53,231 bases of DNA from Chara braunii (Eukaryota > Plantae > Charophyceae): NCBI GenBank assembly GCA_003427395.1, contig BFEA01000002.1, positions 2,829,739 through 2,882,969 on the forward strand. The letters run 5' to 3'. The translations under genes and the position numbers were made by a program. The notes under the pieces were generated by a model. That model saw only the letters and a list, made by a program, of their open reading frames with translations, had not been told where the DNA came from and did no database searches. The first letter of the stretch is position 1. Every line of letters begins with the position of its first letter. This document shows, in pieces, positions 3,560 through 40,837 of the stretch.

Positions 3560-4003
3560 GTGGGATGACCGTCATGGCAGTCGAGGACCTTGAGCACGTA
3601 CCTCTTTAGGCTGGCACATTTGGGTGCTTGCGTGATCAGGATGCTGCTGAAATTCTTGTATCCGGATCGCCTTAAAATACGGACCGAGGAGGTCAACGTG
3701 CATGTGACCCCGTGGGGGCTTGACCCACGAGGTGAAAGAAACCTGAGTAGTAAGGACCCCCAGCAGGTGCACCTTCTGCCAACCTTAATCTGCTGTGAGA
3801 GTTTTTAGTGTGAGCATGCCTGTTGGGATCCGAAAGATGGTAAATTATGCTTGAGAAGGGCGAGACCCGAGGAAAATCTAGTTGAGGCTCGCAGTGATAT
3901 TGACATAAAAGTCGTTTGCGGGGCTTGGGTACAGGGACGAAAAACTGATCGAATCGTCTAGTAGTTGCTTCCCTCTGAAGCTTCCCTCATGATAGCTGGA
4001 GCT
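3560..4003 (+). pseudogene. Degenerate 28S/26S (LSU) rRNA fragment, end of D2 through post-D3 core; 5' boundary approximate
   Basis: Decayed universal LSU motifs: cgccttaaaatacggaccgaggag (canonical cccgtcttgaaacacggaccaaggag), ccgaaagatggtaaattatgc, gatcgaatcgtctagtagttgcttccctctgaagcttccctcatgatagctggagct. Confidence 0.9.
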
Positions 4004-10541: not shown

Positions 10542-11880
10542 NNNNNNNNNNNNNNNNNNNNNNNNNNNNNNNNNNNNNNNNNNNNNNNNNNNNNNNNNNN
10601 NNNNNNNNNNNNNNNNNNNNNNNNNNNNNNNNNNNNNNNNNNNNNNNNNNNNNNNNNNNNNNNNNNNNNNNNNNNNNNNNNNNNNNNNNNNNNNNNNNNN
10701 NNNNNNNNNNNNNNNNNNNNNNNNNNNNNNNNNNNNNNNNNNNNNNNNNNNNNNNNNNNNNNNNNNNNNNNNNNNNNNNNNNNNNNNNNNNNNNNNNNNN
10801 NNNNNNNNNNNNNNNNNNNNNNNNNNNNNNNNNNNNNNNNNNNNNNNNNNNNNNNNNNNNNNNNNNNNNNNNNNNNNNNNNNNNNNNNNNNNNNNNNNNN
10901 NNNNNNNNNNNNNNNNNNNNNNNNNNNNNNNNNNNNNNNNNNNNNNNNNNNNNNNNNNNNNNNNNNNNNNNNNNNNNNNNNNNNNNNNNNNNNNNNNNNN
11001 NNNNNNNNNNNNNNNNNNNNNNNNNNNNNNNNNNNNNNNNNNNNNNNNNNNNNNNNNNNNNNNNNNNNNNNNNNNNNNNNNNNNNNNNNNNNNNNNNNNN
11101 NNNNNNNNNNNNNNNNNNNNNNNNNNNNNNNNNNNNNNNNNNNNNNNNNNNNNNNNNNNNNNNNNNNNNNNNNNNNNNNNNNNNNNNNNNNNNNNNNNNN
11201 NGTTTTTTGTTCTATTTCGTTTTTAGAATCTCGTTCGTTATTTTTATTTCAATTTTCGGCTTTTTCGGTTATTATTATTTTTGTTCTTAGAAACAATGAC
11301 GTTCCCGCTACCGGTAGCCGGAGGATCGGCTTGATAGATGGGAAAGGTACTGGTGGTTCAACGAGGTGATAAGAGCATCACCGTCAATTGCGCGCGGGTG
11401 GTGAAGGCTCCGTCTATTGCAGCACCTGCTGGAAATCAGGTCCAACGTCCCTGTGTAATACAATACAATATGTTTATGCATGATGCTCGAGGTTGGCTCC
11501 AGCAATCATGTAGAATACCATGTGTCCATGCATGATGTTAAGATATGATTTGAGGAAGACCCATTTCGTCCCCAACTATTCGGATTTGTAGGGAGTTGTA
11601 ACTGCGAGTTATTGCTTTCAAATGGGCGCCCGGGAGGGCCCACGATCTTCCCCCAGAAGCGCCTTGCTATTCTCGTTGCCTTGTGTTGGGAAGGCCGACT
11701 GTGTCTAGGCTATGGGCTTGATACCATGGGTTCCAGAAATGCCTTCAAGTTCAAGTTGGTGTTGTTCATTTTTGCCTTAAGCTCAGAAGGGCGACTTTGT
11801 ATAGGCTTTGAGCTTGATACCTCGGGTCTTCTTGTGCCTGCAGGGTGTGGTCCTATCTGCTGTTCATCCTAAAAATTAAT

Positions 11881-12479: not shown

Positions 12480-12982
12480 GACGATGAAGTGGGCCCGTGG
12501 CAGGTGTTCCCATCGCCTTTTTGTAGTCAACCATGATTTCCACCGCAGTTGGTTATCCTGGGTCAATGCGCAGAGCCTCTCAGCATTGTCCACCCATAAG
12601 GAGTGGAAGTTAGGAGAGAGGTCACTGCGTTTGATAATTTGATTTCATTAGGCTCAGCTGACAGCATTTGTCTAAGTTCCTTCCAGGATGCATGTGTATT
12701 CGCTGTGATTGTTTCCACGACTGGTGCTCTTGCCTCCATGTACTCGTATATGTGCTGCTTGCGTTCATAAGCACACCTCATTTGCCATGCTGCCACAAGC
12801 ATTGGCAGACATGTATAATTGAACAGGTTCGTCATGAAGGGTGACCGTGGGCAGCTTGTGGAGGTGTTTCTCCCAGCAAGTTAGTCTTGAGGTCCCACGT
12901 TAGATGGATGCCTTAGGTAGTGCCTCGCTGCGTCCCACCAGCTCCACAGTTCGGCCACCATTGGGCAATCCAAGAGGCAATG
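12480..12982 (-). mobile_element. LINE (L1/Tx1-like) ORF2 3' remnant, downstream half of a zf-RVT split by the 12983-15694 insertion
   Basis: Minus strand reads HCLLDCPMVAELWSWWD, then NLFNYTCLPMLVAAWQMRCAYERK. Homologous to the LINE at about 43000-43680. Confidence 0.85.
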
Positions 12983-13928
12983 TGTGACGAACCACTTCCT
13001 GACCCCGTGCTATCTTTCGTACCCCTTGACTCAATTCCCCCTTTTTGTATTATACCGACCCAACAAAGCCCCCGTCGCTTTTCTTGATTTCAGGTGCCTT
13101 GTTTAGGCCCCCAGTTTTCAGAGGTTCTTTTGATTCTTGGAATTCTGCTTTTTGTAATTCGGGAAATGCATGGGAAATTACGCGCGCCTTAGCGAGCACA
13201 CTGGGAATCGGGCTCGACAGTTAGGAATTCCGGAATAAGCAGAATCCGACGTGTCTTTTTCTTTGCATGAATGTTCTCGGTCACGTCGGAGAAAACTCTA
13301 GGAATATTGTGAAAATACGGATAGGCATAGGACTTTCTTTTCCCGCGTCGATTTTCGCGCGCGGATATGGTGATTTCAATTTTTGACTTGGTGTACGGCA
13401 TAGGCAAGCTGTAACTGTTTTGGTGCCTTTTTTGTTGTCGACGCCAAGCATGCGAGCTTCCTTCTCCTTATTTCCCGCGTCATTCTTCTCTCTCCCTTCT
13501 CCCTCTTCTTCTTCTCCTATCGCAACTGTTTTTCCCCCTCTCTGCTTTTTGCGCGCTTGTTTCCCTTCTTGATCATCTGAATCTTGGACCCGTCTCGCGC
13601 TACTTTTCGCGCCTCTTTCCTTCTCGCTCTTCAACCTTGGCTCACGAAACCCGGTTGATCCTTCGATTACCCTCGCTCACCAATCAGACGCGTTGAGCAA
13701 GAGGATTTTTCTGTTGCGCGACGAATCTGATTGGCTGAACATTGAGTTCCGAAGGATCAACATGGCTTCCCTTGTGCACCCCTCGCTGAATCTTCTCCTC
13801 TTACACCTCGATTTCCCCTCTGTCTTCTCCCCCGTCTGTCTTCTTTTTTGCAACTATAAATTCCGCAAGCGCGCCCGCAAAGCTCTCTTACGTTGTCCAC
13901 TCGCAAGCCAGCTTCCGGGAAGCAGTGG

Positions 13929-14818
13929 CTAAGTGATGCGTTTGGTGCGAGTCGAAAAGTCCCGTCGGACTGACTGTGCGCTGGCCGATTGCGTGCTTGA
14001 TTGCCACGACGGACTGTGGGATCCTGGCGAGCCGTGTCGAGCTTGCGTCAGCGGGGTGACGATCGCAGCGGCGGAAGTTAGCATGCGACGGCCGGGATCG
14101 TTGGTGCGGGTACGAGGATCGGTAATTGGAGTTGAGTGGATGATTGGTCCGGGGCCATACTGGAATTTCACGGCGAATGCGCCTTCATGGTTGCGGATTA
14201 TTTTTTTCTGGTGTGAGTTCATGACTGCGAAGCCGAATGTTCCCTTGTCGGATTCCGGTGTCTCCTGTCTCGACATTTCTTGTCTATCTCTCCCATCTGT
14301 CTCTCTCTCCGATTTGAATGACGATGTGTTATGAGTTTGTCTCTCCTGTGAACCGAAGTGAATTCTTGTGATTTCTTGCGAAGAAAAACTTCTTTCGGAA
14401 CTCTTCCATTAGTTTCCTGGGTAATCCCCGGATGTAAAGGAACTCATTCCTCTTGCCTTGTAAACGGTGGATGCGTGTGTACAATCCCCCGATTTATTTC
14501 TGATTTGTGCACCATTGTCATTTTCGCACCTTCCACAGTGGATGTATGTATAAAAATGCTTGTATTTTTGCATTGATTAGACCCATCGCTCGACGGGATT
14601 TTGTTCGAGAATGCAAGAGTGTTTAGATCTGTCATTCTGAATGCACTGCGCATGCCATCTGCCTTATACTGCACGACATCTGCAGACAGTCTATGGGGCA
14701 ACCTCGAAAAAGCCAGGCGCCTCGGGTTTTTGTCGACCTGGTCTGCTGAACTGAGTCGCGGGTTGATCTCTCGAAACTTCAACCCGATTATTGCATGGTT
14801 GTACGAACTCTGTAACAT
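13929..14818 (-). pseudogene. Disrupted ORF of unknown function inside the TG...CA element (pieces 14444-14818 and 13929-14276)
   Basis: AIVTPLTQ is conserved with the copy at about 38920-38946 through third-position changes (ccg ctg acg caa vs cct cta act cag). PRLSSAD aligns to TRLSSLD. One stop and one frameshift separate the pieces. Confidence 0.6.
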
Positions 14819-14922
14819 GCTTCCCCTGTGTCGAAGGGAAGGAAACTACTAGTTAGTTCTTTTTTGATTGTGCTTTTTGATGACATCTCAGAGTTTTTGC
14901 AAACTCATTTTGATTGATTGAT

Positions 14923-15462
14923 ATGTGGACTGACGACCGTACCTCGATCGGGCGCCAACCTCCCGTATCTCCCTCGCCAACGCGCCCCTTCCCTTACAAC
15001 GAGAAAAGGACACGTGTTTGCGAGCGGGACGTACGAGAAGCTGTCGCACGGATCGGCGGACGATATTACTTCCCTCCCGAAAATCGTTGTTCTGGATTCG
15101 TGGATGCGGGCTTTTTCATTGTCGATACGCACTACCCACCCTACTTAGTACGATTGCCATTTAACGAGCTGATCGTCATTCCGTGGACGGCAGTGGCGCC
15201 CCATTGGCCTCGAACCCTGTGCACGGAGTGCCAGCGTCTCGATCGCCACGAATCAAAGGGCTTCCACTACCGGATACGGAGTGAAGACGAGCACAAGGAA
15301 AGAGCCACGCAGCTGAGACCCTCCACGTCGGACTCGGAACTGACCAACGAACGACGTCGGGACTTGATACGGAAACGGGACACGCAGAGTGTACCGAAAC
15401 CCTTCCGCTCTAAACGAAGATCCACAGCGCGGTGGGAAGTTCGACAATACTTTTTAGATTGA
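14923..15462 (+). CDS. Intact 179-aa hypothetical protein inside the TG...CA element
   Basis: ATG to TGA open frame. A frameshifted homolog at 39678-40205 shares MWTD, RPFPYNE, RVC..DVRE, YYFP.E.RC.GFV.AG..IVDTH.PPY, FNELIVIPW.AV..HWP.TL, KGFHY, KERAT.L.P.TSDS. Confidence 0.75.
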   Translation: MWTDDRTSIGRQPPVSPSPTRPFPYNEKRTRVCERDVREAVARIGGRYYFPPENRCSGFVDAGFFIVDTHYPPYLVRLPFNELIVIPWTAVAPHWPRTLCTECQRLDRHESKGFHYRIRSEDEHKERATQLRPSTSDSELTNERRRDLIRKRDTQSVPKPFRSKRRSTARWEVRQYFLD

Positions 15463-15694
15463 ATTTGGATTTCTCTCTTTTCGCGCCGTGCCCGCGCGCG
15501 CATTTCGCGACGCGCGAAAGCAACCGACTTACTTCATCGGGCCAACACGGGGGATTTCAGTTCTGTCTGCGTCCCCACACTCAATTTTCCAAAAATCCTT
15601 GGCACACCCCATCTCGCTGTTTTTCTGGGCCTTCTTTCCGCACCTTTAGCACTCCGAACGGAAGACAGTACAGGGCGTGAGGTTGCGCGTCACA

Positions 15695-16800
15695 AGTGCT
15701 CCAGCGTGGCCTGTTTCTTGGGGGAGGACCTTCCACAGGAGGTACATAATGGAGACAGCACCTCTCGTGTTTCCAGGTTCATTCTGGATGTGAGCCAGTC
15801 CGGTGGCATGCATTTGGTGAATAATCTGCCATTGCAGCGCTCTGAGGTTGGTGGGTCGAATGCGTGAGTATGTGGACCATTTGGGTCTTTGGAGGTCCTC
15901 TCTTTTGAGAGGCAAGTCTTGGGCCCAACAAGCTTTGATCGGGTCTGCGATTTGTACCATCTTATATGCTGTTCTGTATCCGTTCTTTACTGTGTATTGC
16001 CATACCTGATGTCTGCGGTCTCCCCCCATGTCCAATTCCCATTCCTGTGGGTCGAATGGTAGTTGGGTGAGGGGTGTGGCAGTCCCACATGTGTACAGTC
16101 CTCATCGCCATCGTTGAGCACACAAACTCTGGTGAGTCCAGTCAGGGGTCTCTGGTGGTCAAGCTCCTCATCTCTGCGTAGCTTAGACCATCATTCCCCT
16201 AGTAGCTGGGGTCCATAGGCCTGTAGGCATACCAGCTGTGTGTTTATTTCGTCTACGTTGTACACTGTCATCGGGATCAGCCATCCTTCTAATATCGGGA
16301 TAACCCAGTCCCCTTGTCTCACTGTCGGTCCTTCCACCAGTACTTGGCCCAGCTATCGGCCGTGGAAAAAAATAGAGTAGAAACATTTCTAGTCCGACGA
16401 ATTTGGGTGCTCCTGTAGTGGCCCGTATGTTTCCTAAAATCGTGGCCCGTTACCGGGCACGCCTTTAGAAAGTACTGGTGGTTTAAGCTGCAAGAGTCAT
16501 ATGAGCGGGATGGCCTCTTGAAGTTCTTGCAGGCCTTCCTCTAGTTTCCTGATATGGGATATCTGAGGCCGGAGGTCAGTGTATAACCCCTTCTTTACCC
16601 AGGGGAGCCCTCGCGAGTGGGTGTGAAGAGAGAAGGGGTTGCCTGTTCGGTCTAGGAGGTGTGGATTGCCAAATAGGTGGTGACGCCATATTTCCTCCCA
16701 TCTCAGCGGGACAGGTTTTTGGGTCGGGCCTCTTTCTCTCCAGAGTCGGGGGATTGACAGCCACAGGGGATCAGTTCTCAGATCCAATCTGGCAGTGGAT
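15695..16800 (-). mobile_element. LINE ORF2 remnant, upstream part of the same LINE as 12480-12982
   Basis: Minus strand: WRHHLFGNPHLLDRTG...WVKKG, then LRALQWQIIH, then LCTSCGRSSPKKQATLEH (zf-RVT CxxC...H). Confidence 0.82.
16334..16481. mobile_element. Small TIR element inserted in the LINE
   Basis: ccaccagtactt / aagtactggtgg inverted ends and gtggcccgt subterminal repeats. No convincing TSD. A similar element (tagtacct...aggtacta) lies at about 18467-18657. Confidence 0.4.
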
Positions 16801-23140: not shown

Positions 23141-24180
23141 CTTCCTTCATTTGGAGGAGTGCTGACCATATCTCTTCTTTCCTTAGTTCACTCTCTCCAT
23201 TTTGCTCTGAACCCTTTTCCATTGTATCCTTATTTCTGTTTCGATAAATTGCCTGACAATGTCAGCTGGTTCCCCTTCCCCCATTCTGCCCCCTTCCTGG
23301 TCGAAAACACACCTTACCACCGCCTTTCTGACAGTGGAAAAAAGGTTATTGGCATAGTGGGATGCTTGTGGTCTATGCCACTCACCTAATAGTGTTGTCT
23401 CCCGATGCCAAGACCATGCCTCCTCGGTTCCTAGTTGTGACCAGATGCGGTCCCACCATCGCCACATCAGTACATCCCCTGGGCATTGGAGGAAGATGTG
23501 TTCTATTGTCTCACATATTCTTTGACTTGGGAAACCTGCATAGCAGGATTTGCACCATGGGAGAGCGTCCCCCCTTTCCAGGTTCGTTCTGTCGATTATC
23601 CAGTTGTTTGTGGGGAGGCACCTATGACTGATTTGCCATTGCAGGGAGGCGAACTTCGCTGGTATCTTTTTCACGCCCTTGAACCATTGTCGGCTTCTAA
23701 TCTGATCGTTACCTAAGTTTAAGTGTCTCTTCCAGCTGTCCCTTATCCCTGCCCATACATCCACCCTGGGTCTAATCATCCTATAGGTGGTTCTTACTGA
23801 CAGTTCAACAAGTTGCACTGGTTGCCCTTGCCGGCCCTCTCCCATTGTCATTTGAGTGGGTCCAGGGCTAAGCAAGACAGGGGGGGTTGCGGTCGGTAGA
23901 CTTGCCATTGAGTCCTTCCCTCCTTGAGGCACTGCAACACCTGGATTCGGTAAAAGTTGGTTTTGTCATGCCACTGGACCGAGTCTAGGTGGTATCTGAC
24001 CAATGTGTCGTCCCCTCTTCTCTCAAAAAGGTTGATCATCGCCCCTTTCGTTTCGACTTCCACTACGAAACCTAATTGTAGGGGGAGCTCCTCTACCCTG
24101 ACCGCTACCCAATCCTGTTCCTGAAATAACGGTCCTTTCCTCAGGATTACCACCCAAGCTAGGGGAGTCGATAATATCAA
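23141..24180 (-). mobile_element. Fragment of a related LINE (ORF2 C-terminal / zf-RVT region)
   Basis: SLQWQISHRCLPTNNW...PWCKSC...ETIEHIFLQCP is clearly paralogous to 20090-21307. The upstream continuation probably lies at 26105-26330. Confidence 0.9.

Positions 24181-38855: not shown

Positions 38856-40837
<1,982 letters not shown>

Follow-up and report, generated by a model that had tools for sequence, protein, structure and literature searches.

A likely orphan gene inside the long terminal repeat of a Chara braunii retrotransposon

Within a 53,231-nucleotide stretch of the Chara braunii genome (assembly GCA_003427395.1, contig BFEA01000002.1, positions 2,829,739 to 2,882,969; hereafter the window), an intact open reading frame (ORF) on the plus strand, here called the plus ORF, lies wholly inside a 2712-bp unit that is the long terminal repeat (LTR) of a Chara LTR retrotransposon. 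The copy in the window is a decaying solo LTR. Taken as a whole, our data make it likely that this solo LTR carries one genuine orphan gene, encoding a protein with four cysteines, and that the ORFs on the opposite strand arose by chance. An LTR is an unusual place for a gene, and little is understood about the accessory genes that LTR retrotransposons carry. The original prediction for this DNA, made from its letters alone, had placed an intact frame of 179 aa within an LTR or small TG..CA element; the ATG-to-stop frame is confirmed here, and the TG...CA unit proved to be a retrotransposon LTR.

14923..15462, plus strand: the plus ORF, an LTR-borne accessory gene of 179 aa, running from ATG to stop with its frame intact.

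The plus ORF belongs to a family. Intact homologues of 164-179 aa occur on two Chara braunii scaffolds, on unplaced BFBZ01 contigs and on one ENA metagenome contig (related loci were drawn from the same C. braunii assembly and from BFBZ01 contigs, which are filed as metagenome contigs), and translation of the loci L003 (C. braunii scaffold BFEA01000018), L005 (BFEA01000198), L001 (BFBZ01005442), L002 and L004 revealed intact homologues. Repeat families are common to the window and the related loci at 75-88% identity. A 5.8-billion-cluster collection yielded the relatives P0001 (173 aa, 71% identity) and P0002 (175 aa, 49% identity, from the ENA metagenome contig), and a profile search of 1.84 billion representative proteins yielded P0003, a 1077-aa Chara braunii gene model in which the domain occupies residues 420-578, and P0004 (164 aa, 25-33% identity); both searches returned family members only. 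The metagenome contig with P0002, at 49% identity, suggests that the family predates the C. braunii subfamilies. A region search added P0005, a second C. braunii gene model with the domain, and a metagenome scan added two further members of the P0004 type. Below, copy A denotes the plus ORF at 14923-15462 and copy B its homologue at 39678 in the window. The frame is open in four of four A-type copies, and also in the P0002 and P0004 lineages.

The presence of the domain in two annotated C. braunii proteins (P0003, which is CBR_g19774, and P0005, which is CBR_g17916), together with the known ability of retrotransposons to transduce host sequence (reviewed in PMC7264820), might suggest a host origin for the plus ORF, as a gene fragment that was captured or as a domesticated host gene. 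We consider this very unlikely: in both gene models (78 kb and 27 kb) the DNA of the domain lies inside a copy of this same LTR, neither the 1.84 billion representatives nor the 5.8 billion clusters held a stand-alone host homologue, and the start and stop of the ORF are conserved across diverged LTR families, with the ORF present in every copy examined. The models themselves, CBR_g19774 (L003:6001-84218), which combines a Myb/SANT-like domain, the LTR ORF and DCP1, and CBR_g17916 (L005:10001-37224, 920 aa), look like chimeras that have absorbed the LTR ORF as an exon. Recognizing the LTR-borne ORF would thus improve the annotation of C. braunii for at least these two chimeric models.

Selection on the encoded protein was estimated for five pairs of diverged copies as ratios of nonsynonymous to synonymous substitution rates (dN/dS) by the Nei-Gojobori method, with bootstrap 95% intervals on the corresponding ratio of proportions (pN/pS).

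Window and L005: dN/dS 0.15.
Window and L001: dN/dS 0.21.
L003 and L005: dN/dS 0.16.
L003 and L001: dN/dS 0.16.
L005 and L001: dN/dS 0.18.

The pN/pS intervals lay below 0.42 for all five pairs, and none of the ratios approaches 1, the value that comparison across copies would have given for an unconstrained frame. Between the window and L005, mismatches in the plus ORF numbered 23, 18 and 60 at codon positions 1, 2 and 3. When the window-L001 alignment was scanned in sliding segments over 15000-15450 in all six frames, pN/pS was 0.23-0.24 in the ORF's own frame (+1), 0.26-0.34 in the complementary frame whose third positions coincide with those of the ORF, and 1.06-1.59 in the other four. The plus ORF is, then, a protein-coding gene that has been under purifying selection across sub-lineages. 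Purifying selection had been claimed for both strands; the claim stands for the plus ORF, and no constraint at the codon level was found for the minus-strand ORFs described below. Since the family diversified into several sub-lineages under such selection, the protein matters for the propagation of the element.

This evidence concerns the active history of the family and not the window locus today. The closest pair, the window and L003 (88% nucleotide identity), gave a ratio of 0.37 with an interval reaching 0.70, and its divergence was near equal at the three codon positions (0.10, 0.095 and 0.14), so that it looks nearly neutral and mostly a product of decay after insertion. The window copy also carries a W35R replacement in the motif RVCEWD, at a position where all other aligned copies have tryptophan, copy B and the distant P0004 lineage included. 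Because of this change at an otherwise conserved tryptophan and the near-neutral divergence from its nearest relative, we regard the window copy of the plus ORF as a decaying relic despite its open frame.

Copy B is further along the same path.

39678..40205, plus strand: copy B, a pseudogene of the plus-ORF family; the LTR-like unit around it is more diverged.

The two copies match at 14923-15341 and 39678-40090 (67% nucleotide identity over 428 columns by blastn; tblastn E = 1e-24), which is the only DNA-level relationship of the stretch 13929-15462 within the window. Both encode RPFPYNE, and alignment bore out the earlier observation that all seven codons differ synonymously, each at its third base only. 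Copy B had on that ground been taken for a second maintained copy, which it is not: an 8-nt gap near 39798 shifts its frame, a stop follows at 39997-39999, a second frameshift places the C-terminal part in a third frame, and both cysteines of the CxxC motif are lost, with LFSDY in place of LCTEC. Across 104 codons in two readable pieces, pN/pS between copies A and B was 0.34 (pS 0.63, pN 0.21).

Two frames are open on the opposite strand of the LTR, the first of them over a block of conserved DNA.

13929..14276, minus strand: minus ORF of 115 aa containing PLTQ; a chance ORF.
14444..14818, minus strand: second minus ORF, of 124 aa, whose start is separated from the plus ORF by about 105 bp; a chance ORF.
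13850..14200, no strand assigned: conserved non-coding block, which holds most of the 115-aa minus ORF.
38876..38979, plus strand: remnant of the conserved non-coding block in the unit of copy B, by local alignment to 13999-14099.

The original prediction had described one minus-strand ORF, with PLTQ in it and a start about 100 bp away from the plus ORF, and had joined the pair into a bidirectional cassette. This merged two ORFs, of which the one with PLTQ starts about 650 bp away. Two divergent accessory genes, transcribed from one bidirectional promoter at about 14820-14920, would be in keeping with the open minus frames of 115 and 124 aa in the window, with the conservation of the block beneath the 115-aa ORF and with the remnant of that block beside copy B, but the other LTR copies make such an arrangement highly improbable. 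The 115-aa frame has an internal stop in L003, which is 88% identical, and frameshifts in L005 and L001, and pN/pS is about 0.7-1.2 in all frames (over 13800-14250, 0.66-1.23 across the six frames and 0.74-1.23 in the frame of the 115-aa ORF). The 124-aa ORF, for which the window holds no homologue, falls where the LTR is least conserved and rich in indels, a part that L001 has mostly lost and L005 has lost in some measure, and the proposed promoter region is likewise the part of the LTR with least conservation (identity 0.0-0.33). Given these stops and frameshifts and the lack of codon-level constraint, the minus-strand ORFs are chance ORFs and not genes, and there is no second, divergently transcribed gene. 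The PLTQ match reported earlier does reflect residual DNA homology: 13999-14099 aligned to 38876-38979 with a Smith-Waterman score of 47, compared with a maximum of 34 in 100 shuffles, and collinearly with copy B. It is not coding homology, in view of the stop, the frameshifts and the pN/pS values.

The unit in which the plus ORF lies interrupts a long interspersed nuclear element (LINE).

12983..15694, plus strand: solo LTR of 2712 bp, with ends TGTGACG...CGTCACA (7-bp inverted repeat).
12979..12982, no strand assigned: left target-site duplication, AATG.
15695..15698, no strand assigned: right target-site duplication, AGTG, a 3/4 match to the left copy.
15695..16035, minus strand: interrupted LINE, upstream part of its C-terminal zf-RVT region, which continues at 12982 and below.

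Removal of the unit and 4 bp restores the zf-RVT frame of the LINE (...ATLE joined to HCLLDCP...), and the translation across the junction agrees with the CxxC...EH....C motif in the zf-RVT ORF at 23183-23932. The plus ORF occupies positions 1941-2480 of the LTR on its sense strand and ends 232 bp before the LTR does. Full-length copies aligned end to end were found at L003:41280-43994 (88%) and L005:8107-10779, the latter inserted within a LINE and flanked by a perfect 4-bp duplication (GGCC/GGCC), while L001 holds a copy that is cut at its 5' end and bears a nested insertion. The window and L005 share the termini TGTGACG...CGTCACA; of these, L003 has the 5' one and L001 the 3' one.

The copy in L003 gives the unit its identity. 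Directly after it, on the same strand, stands TGGCATCGGAGCC, which resembles a primer-binding site (PBS) and is one base off the PBS TGGTATCGGAGC that another Chara LTR element, at L005:40211, has after its ...TAACA end; no tRNA gene matching the PBS was found in the loci fetched. A zf-CCHC ORF (44657-45565) and a retropepsin ORF (45722-47014) follow on that strand, and the latter matches RVP_2 and gag-asp_proteas. Because L003 thus shows the anatomy of 5' LTR, PBS, gag and protease, the 2712-bp unit is the LTR of a Chara LTR retrotransposon. The element is probably Ty3/gypsy-like. The PBS-like site is also part of an imperfect palindrome, CATCGGAGCCGACACG / TGTCGGTTCTGATG, at L003:43993-44027.

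The protein encoded by the plus ORF is basic and hydrophilic, with an isoelectric point of 9.8, a grand average of hydropathy of -1.0 and no hydrophobic segment. It has exactly four cysteines, at residues 33, 56, 100 and 103 (C-x22-C-x43-C-x2-C), the last two forming LCxEC. All intact copies have C33, C100 and C103. C56 is retained by the close copies and by P0002, but the alignments place no P0004 cysteine at that position. Conserved motifs of the core are RPFPYNE, RVCEWDVRE, GFVI, FPPY, LPFNELxVIPW and HWPRxLCxEC, and the C-terminal third holds an acidic serine patch (STSDSEL) and a bipartite element resembling a nuclear localization signal (RKR-x11-SKRR, 150-167). The protein consists of a core of about 100 residues with the four cysteines, followed by a basic, probably disordered tail.

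None of our searches linked this protein to a described family. Pfam gave no family at E <= 1 for the full plus ORF and nothing for the other ORFs of the stretch, and for nine core sequences its sole match was zf-ChsH2 at E = 0.29, which we attribute to chance. The PDB held no match by sequence and nothing at E <= 10 by profile, and a feature search of the ESM Atlas gave no usable match. The assembly index did not list the protein in the exact form encoded in the window. Profiles of gag, protease, reverse transcriptase (RT), ribonuclease H, integrase, env, transposase and the Sag protein of mouse mammary tumour virus (MMTV) likewise gave no significant match, in agreement with the earlier remark that nothing akin to gag, protease, RT, integrase or a transposase could be recognized in the ORF. 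Since the protein has no detectable relative outside Chara-derived data, it is a candidate for a new fold and a new function, in a lineage near land plants.

Upstream of the plus ORF, the LTR holds a promoter-like site, and downstream of it a second conserved region.

13680..13734, plus strand: inverted CCAAT-box pair CCAATCAG ... CTGATTGG (inverted repeat I1), in 4/4 LTR copies.
13852..13862, plus strand: TATA-like box CAACTATAAAT, in 3/4 copies, with TATGAA in L001.
15463..15694, plus strand: conserved 3' part of the LTR, comprising the blocks GGGGGATTTCAGTT and CCCCACACTCAATTTTCCAAAAA and the terminal 45 bp; p-distance to L005 0.135.

The TATA-like box lies about 120 bp downstream of the CCAAT pair, at the edge of the conserved block 13850-14200, whose p-distance to L005 is 0.18, versus 0.34-0.43 in variable parts of the LTR and 0.335 at third positions of the ORF. 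The block has no codon periodicity. RNAalifold on five sequences of it returned a positive (penalizing) covariation term, with 3 of 51 pairs changed on both sides, and so no support for a structure. The block is constrained as DNA or RNA and not as protein. On the strength of the consensus motifs, we infer that the CCAAT/TATA site may be the core promoter of the LTR, followed by a constrained leader or R segment. No conserved AATAAA or ATTAAA signal was found in the LTR, and a candidate splice acceptor, a CAG at about 14888, was rejected, as it is not conserved in other copies.

Several observations weigh against reading the stretch as a solo LTR with a working gene. The internal region in L003 is incomplete: it holds CCHC and protease domains only, RT and integrase were not found there, and the region stops after the protease, with no ORF of at least 90 aa for 9 kb. 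No element with two LTRs was recovered in the loci read, and neither the window nor L003 (90 kb) nor L005 (47 kb) contains a direct-repeat pair. About 22 ATGs intervene between the TATA-like box and the start of the plus ORF and make simple cap-dependent translation from that promoter unlikely; translation of the ORF from it would need a shorter or spliced transcript; alternatively, the ORF may lie in U3 and be expressed from RNAs that contain the 3' LTR. Transcript evidence is thin: in three oligo-dT RNA-seq runs bearing the same species label, poly(A)+ reads covered the LTR and not its flanks, at low depth, and were mostly 90-95% identical, so that most must come from other copies. Their first mates fell on both strands in similar numbers, and the listed reads showed neither splice joints nor pile-ups of starts or ends, for which reasons they cannot give the strand, start or splicing of an ORF transcript. 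Lastly, AlphaFold2 modelled the protein poorly, with a predicted local distance difference test (pLDDT) score of 41 for the full protein (3-row alignment) and of 50 for the 103-aa core (8 rows; predicted template-modelling score 0.42). Because both models are of low confidence, the fold searches made with them (Foldseek against the PDB, best E = 1.3; shape search of the Atlas, template-modelling score by query <= 0.43) are uninformative.

Two further points, the solitary state of three of the four LTR copies examined (window, L005 and L001) and the loss of the last 9 bp of the L003 copy at its junction with the PBS-like site, also weigh against an LTR and raise the question of whether the 2.7-kb unit is instead a free-standing, non-autonomous TG...CA element with a small gene of its own, mobilized in trans, which in L003 stands by chance beside the leader of another retrotransposon. 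The absence of a second copy within 46 kb downstream in L003 points the same way. We nevertheless judge this explanation unlikely, because in L003 the unit has the same orientation as what follows, with the PBS-like site, one base off a Chara PBS, coming at once and then gag-CCHC and protease, and because a 4-bp duplication, and TG...CA termini in which 7 bp form an inverted repeat, are what an integrase typically produces. Solo LTRs, moreover, are commonly more numerous than full elements.

Both solitary copies with intact ends (window:12983 and L005:8107) lie within LINEs, near the C-terminus of the RT/zf-RVT region, though their orientations, duplications and sites differ. In a genome so rich in LINEs this shared location could have arisen by chance, or it could reflect a preferred target. 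At L001:2614-2940 (minus strand), a fragmented four-cysteine ORF of the P0004 subfamily directly adjoins the end of the A-type LTR, which suggests that one LTR family is nested in another. The insertion within the L001 copy (L001:1980-2506) is a 527-bp AT-rich element, an unclassified small repeat, and it recurs on the opposite strand at window:31752-32279 with 88.6% identity.

Reading the unit as an LTR, we propose that a Chara LTR retrotransposon inserted into the LINE with a 4-bp target duplication and that a solo LTR is what remains of it. The LTR carries one gene, on the same strand as gag-pol, and because the gene lies within the LTR, both LTRs of the provirus and every solo LTR would hold a copy. 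The product is probably a nuclear, zinc-binding factor that acts in trans for the element, and its predicted targets would be nucleic acid or chromatin; transcription, RNA handling and protection from silencing are among its possible tasks. The role of "anti-silencing or targeting factor" named in the original prediction is speculation.

More tentatively, and with considerable doubt, our data raise the possibility that the LTRs of Chara retrotransposons, solo LTRs included, act as self-contained transcription units (CCAAT/TATA promoter, constrained leader and ORF) that supply a lineage-specific, four-cysteine nuclear factor of orphan fold in trans to the whole family, for example to counter host silencing or to license the expression of genomic RNA. 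If true, retroelements would have an accessory gene of a new class, and solo LTRs a new means of remaining functional.

Accessory proteins of better-known retroelements offer several comparisons. In position, the nearest analogue is sag of MMTV, a superantigen gene within the U3 of the LTR of a vertebrate retrovirus, which encodes a membrane glycoprotein of about 320 aa. Like the Chara ORF, sag is a complete accessory ORF in sense orientation inside an LTR, duplicated with it and separate from gag-pol. The likeness goes no further: Pfam scans showed no similarity between the proteins, and the product of the Chara ORF, from an algal retrotransposon, is a basic, cysteine-bearing protein of about 175 aa with no hydrophobic segment. 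The nef gene of HIV and SIV, a 3' ORF that overlaps the U3 of the 3' LTR, is also an accessory ORF sharing sequence with an LTR, though nef only overlaps it, whereas the Chara ORF is wholly inside. Nef chains did appear among the Foldseek rows, but at E > 3 and with a low-confidence model such matches are meaningless.

In concept, the nearest relatives are the additional ORFs (aORFs) of plant LTR retrotransposons such as Grande (gene23), RIRE2 and Retand, which occur family-wide without database homologues, some of whose products are nuclear and for which a regulatory role in retrotransposition is suspected (PMC7264820). As with the Chara ORF, these are extra, conserved frames present in all or most copies of a family. 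Those ORFs, however, belong to the internal region, where most occupy the interval from pol to the 3' LTR and many run antisense (PMC7264820), whereas the Chara ORF lies in sense within the LTR itself and so outside the internal region by which aORFs are defined. Its LTR position is what sets the Chara ORF apart from the plant accessory ORFs described so far, and dosage and trans-complementation would differ for a gene so placed from those of ordinary accessory ORFs. A phrase-based literature search, far from exhaustive, found no description of an LTR-resident gene in any plant or algal retrotransposon, Chara included, and no paper that refers to the BFBZ01 accession. A functional precedent for the mechanism that we propose may be CERV of the Caenorhabditis elegans element Cer1, an element-encoded nuclear accessory protein that acts in trans on the element's own RNA and is made from a spliced mRNA of the Cer1 internal region (PMC10309623). 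The likeness is one of concept, with no sequence similarity expected.

The unit around copy B retains a trace of the region downstream of the ORF as well.

40279..40303, plus strand: remnant of the post-ORF block GGGGGATTTCAGTT in the unit of copy B (score 30, compared with a shuffle maximum of 26).

Within the same LTR-like unit, a segment of about 165 bp (window:40305-40470, plus strand) is AT-rich and weakly matches the Pfam family Oxidored_nitro (E = 0.45). By eye, its translation looks like the C-terminal end of ChlN, the plastid light-independent protochlorophyllide reductase, and the segment is probably a nuclear insertion of plastid DNA.

Elsewhere in the window, a 333-aa ORF at 49695-50696 (plus strand) encodes a Myb/SANT-like DNA-binding domain (PF13837, E = 5e-7), a domain type also found at the N-terminus of the chimeric model P0003. 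At 3693-3968 (plus strand; Rfam RF02543, 136 bits, model positions 675-954) there is an isolated piece of eukaryotic large-subunit rRNA with no rDNA unit around it. Runs of N, which are assembly gaps, occupy 1133-1382, 10542-11201, 44418-45087 and 51537-51986, and they account for an apparent repeat family with 8-bp spacing (D1) and for several long, spurious ORFs in the mechanical lists.

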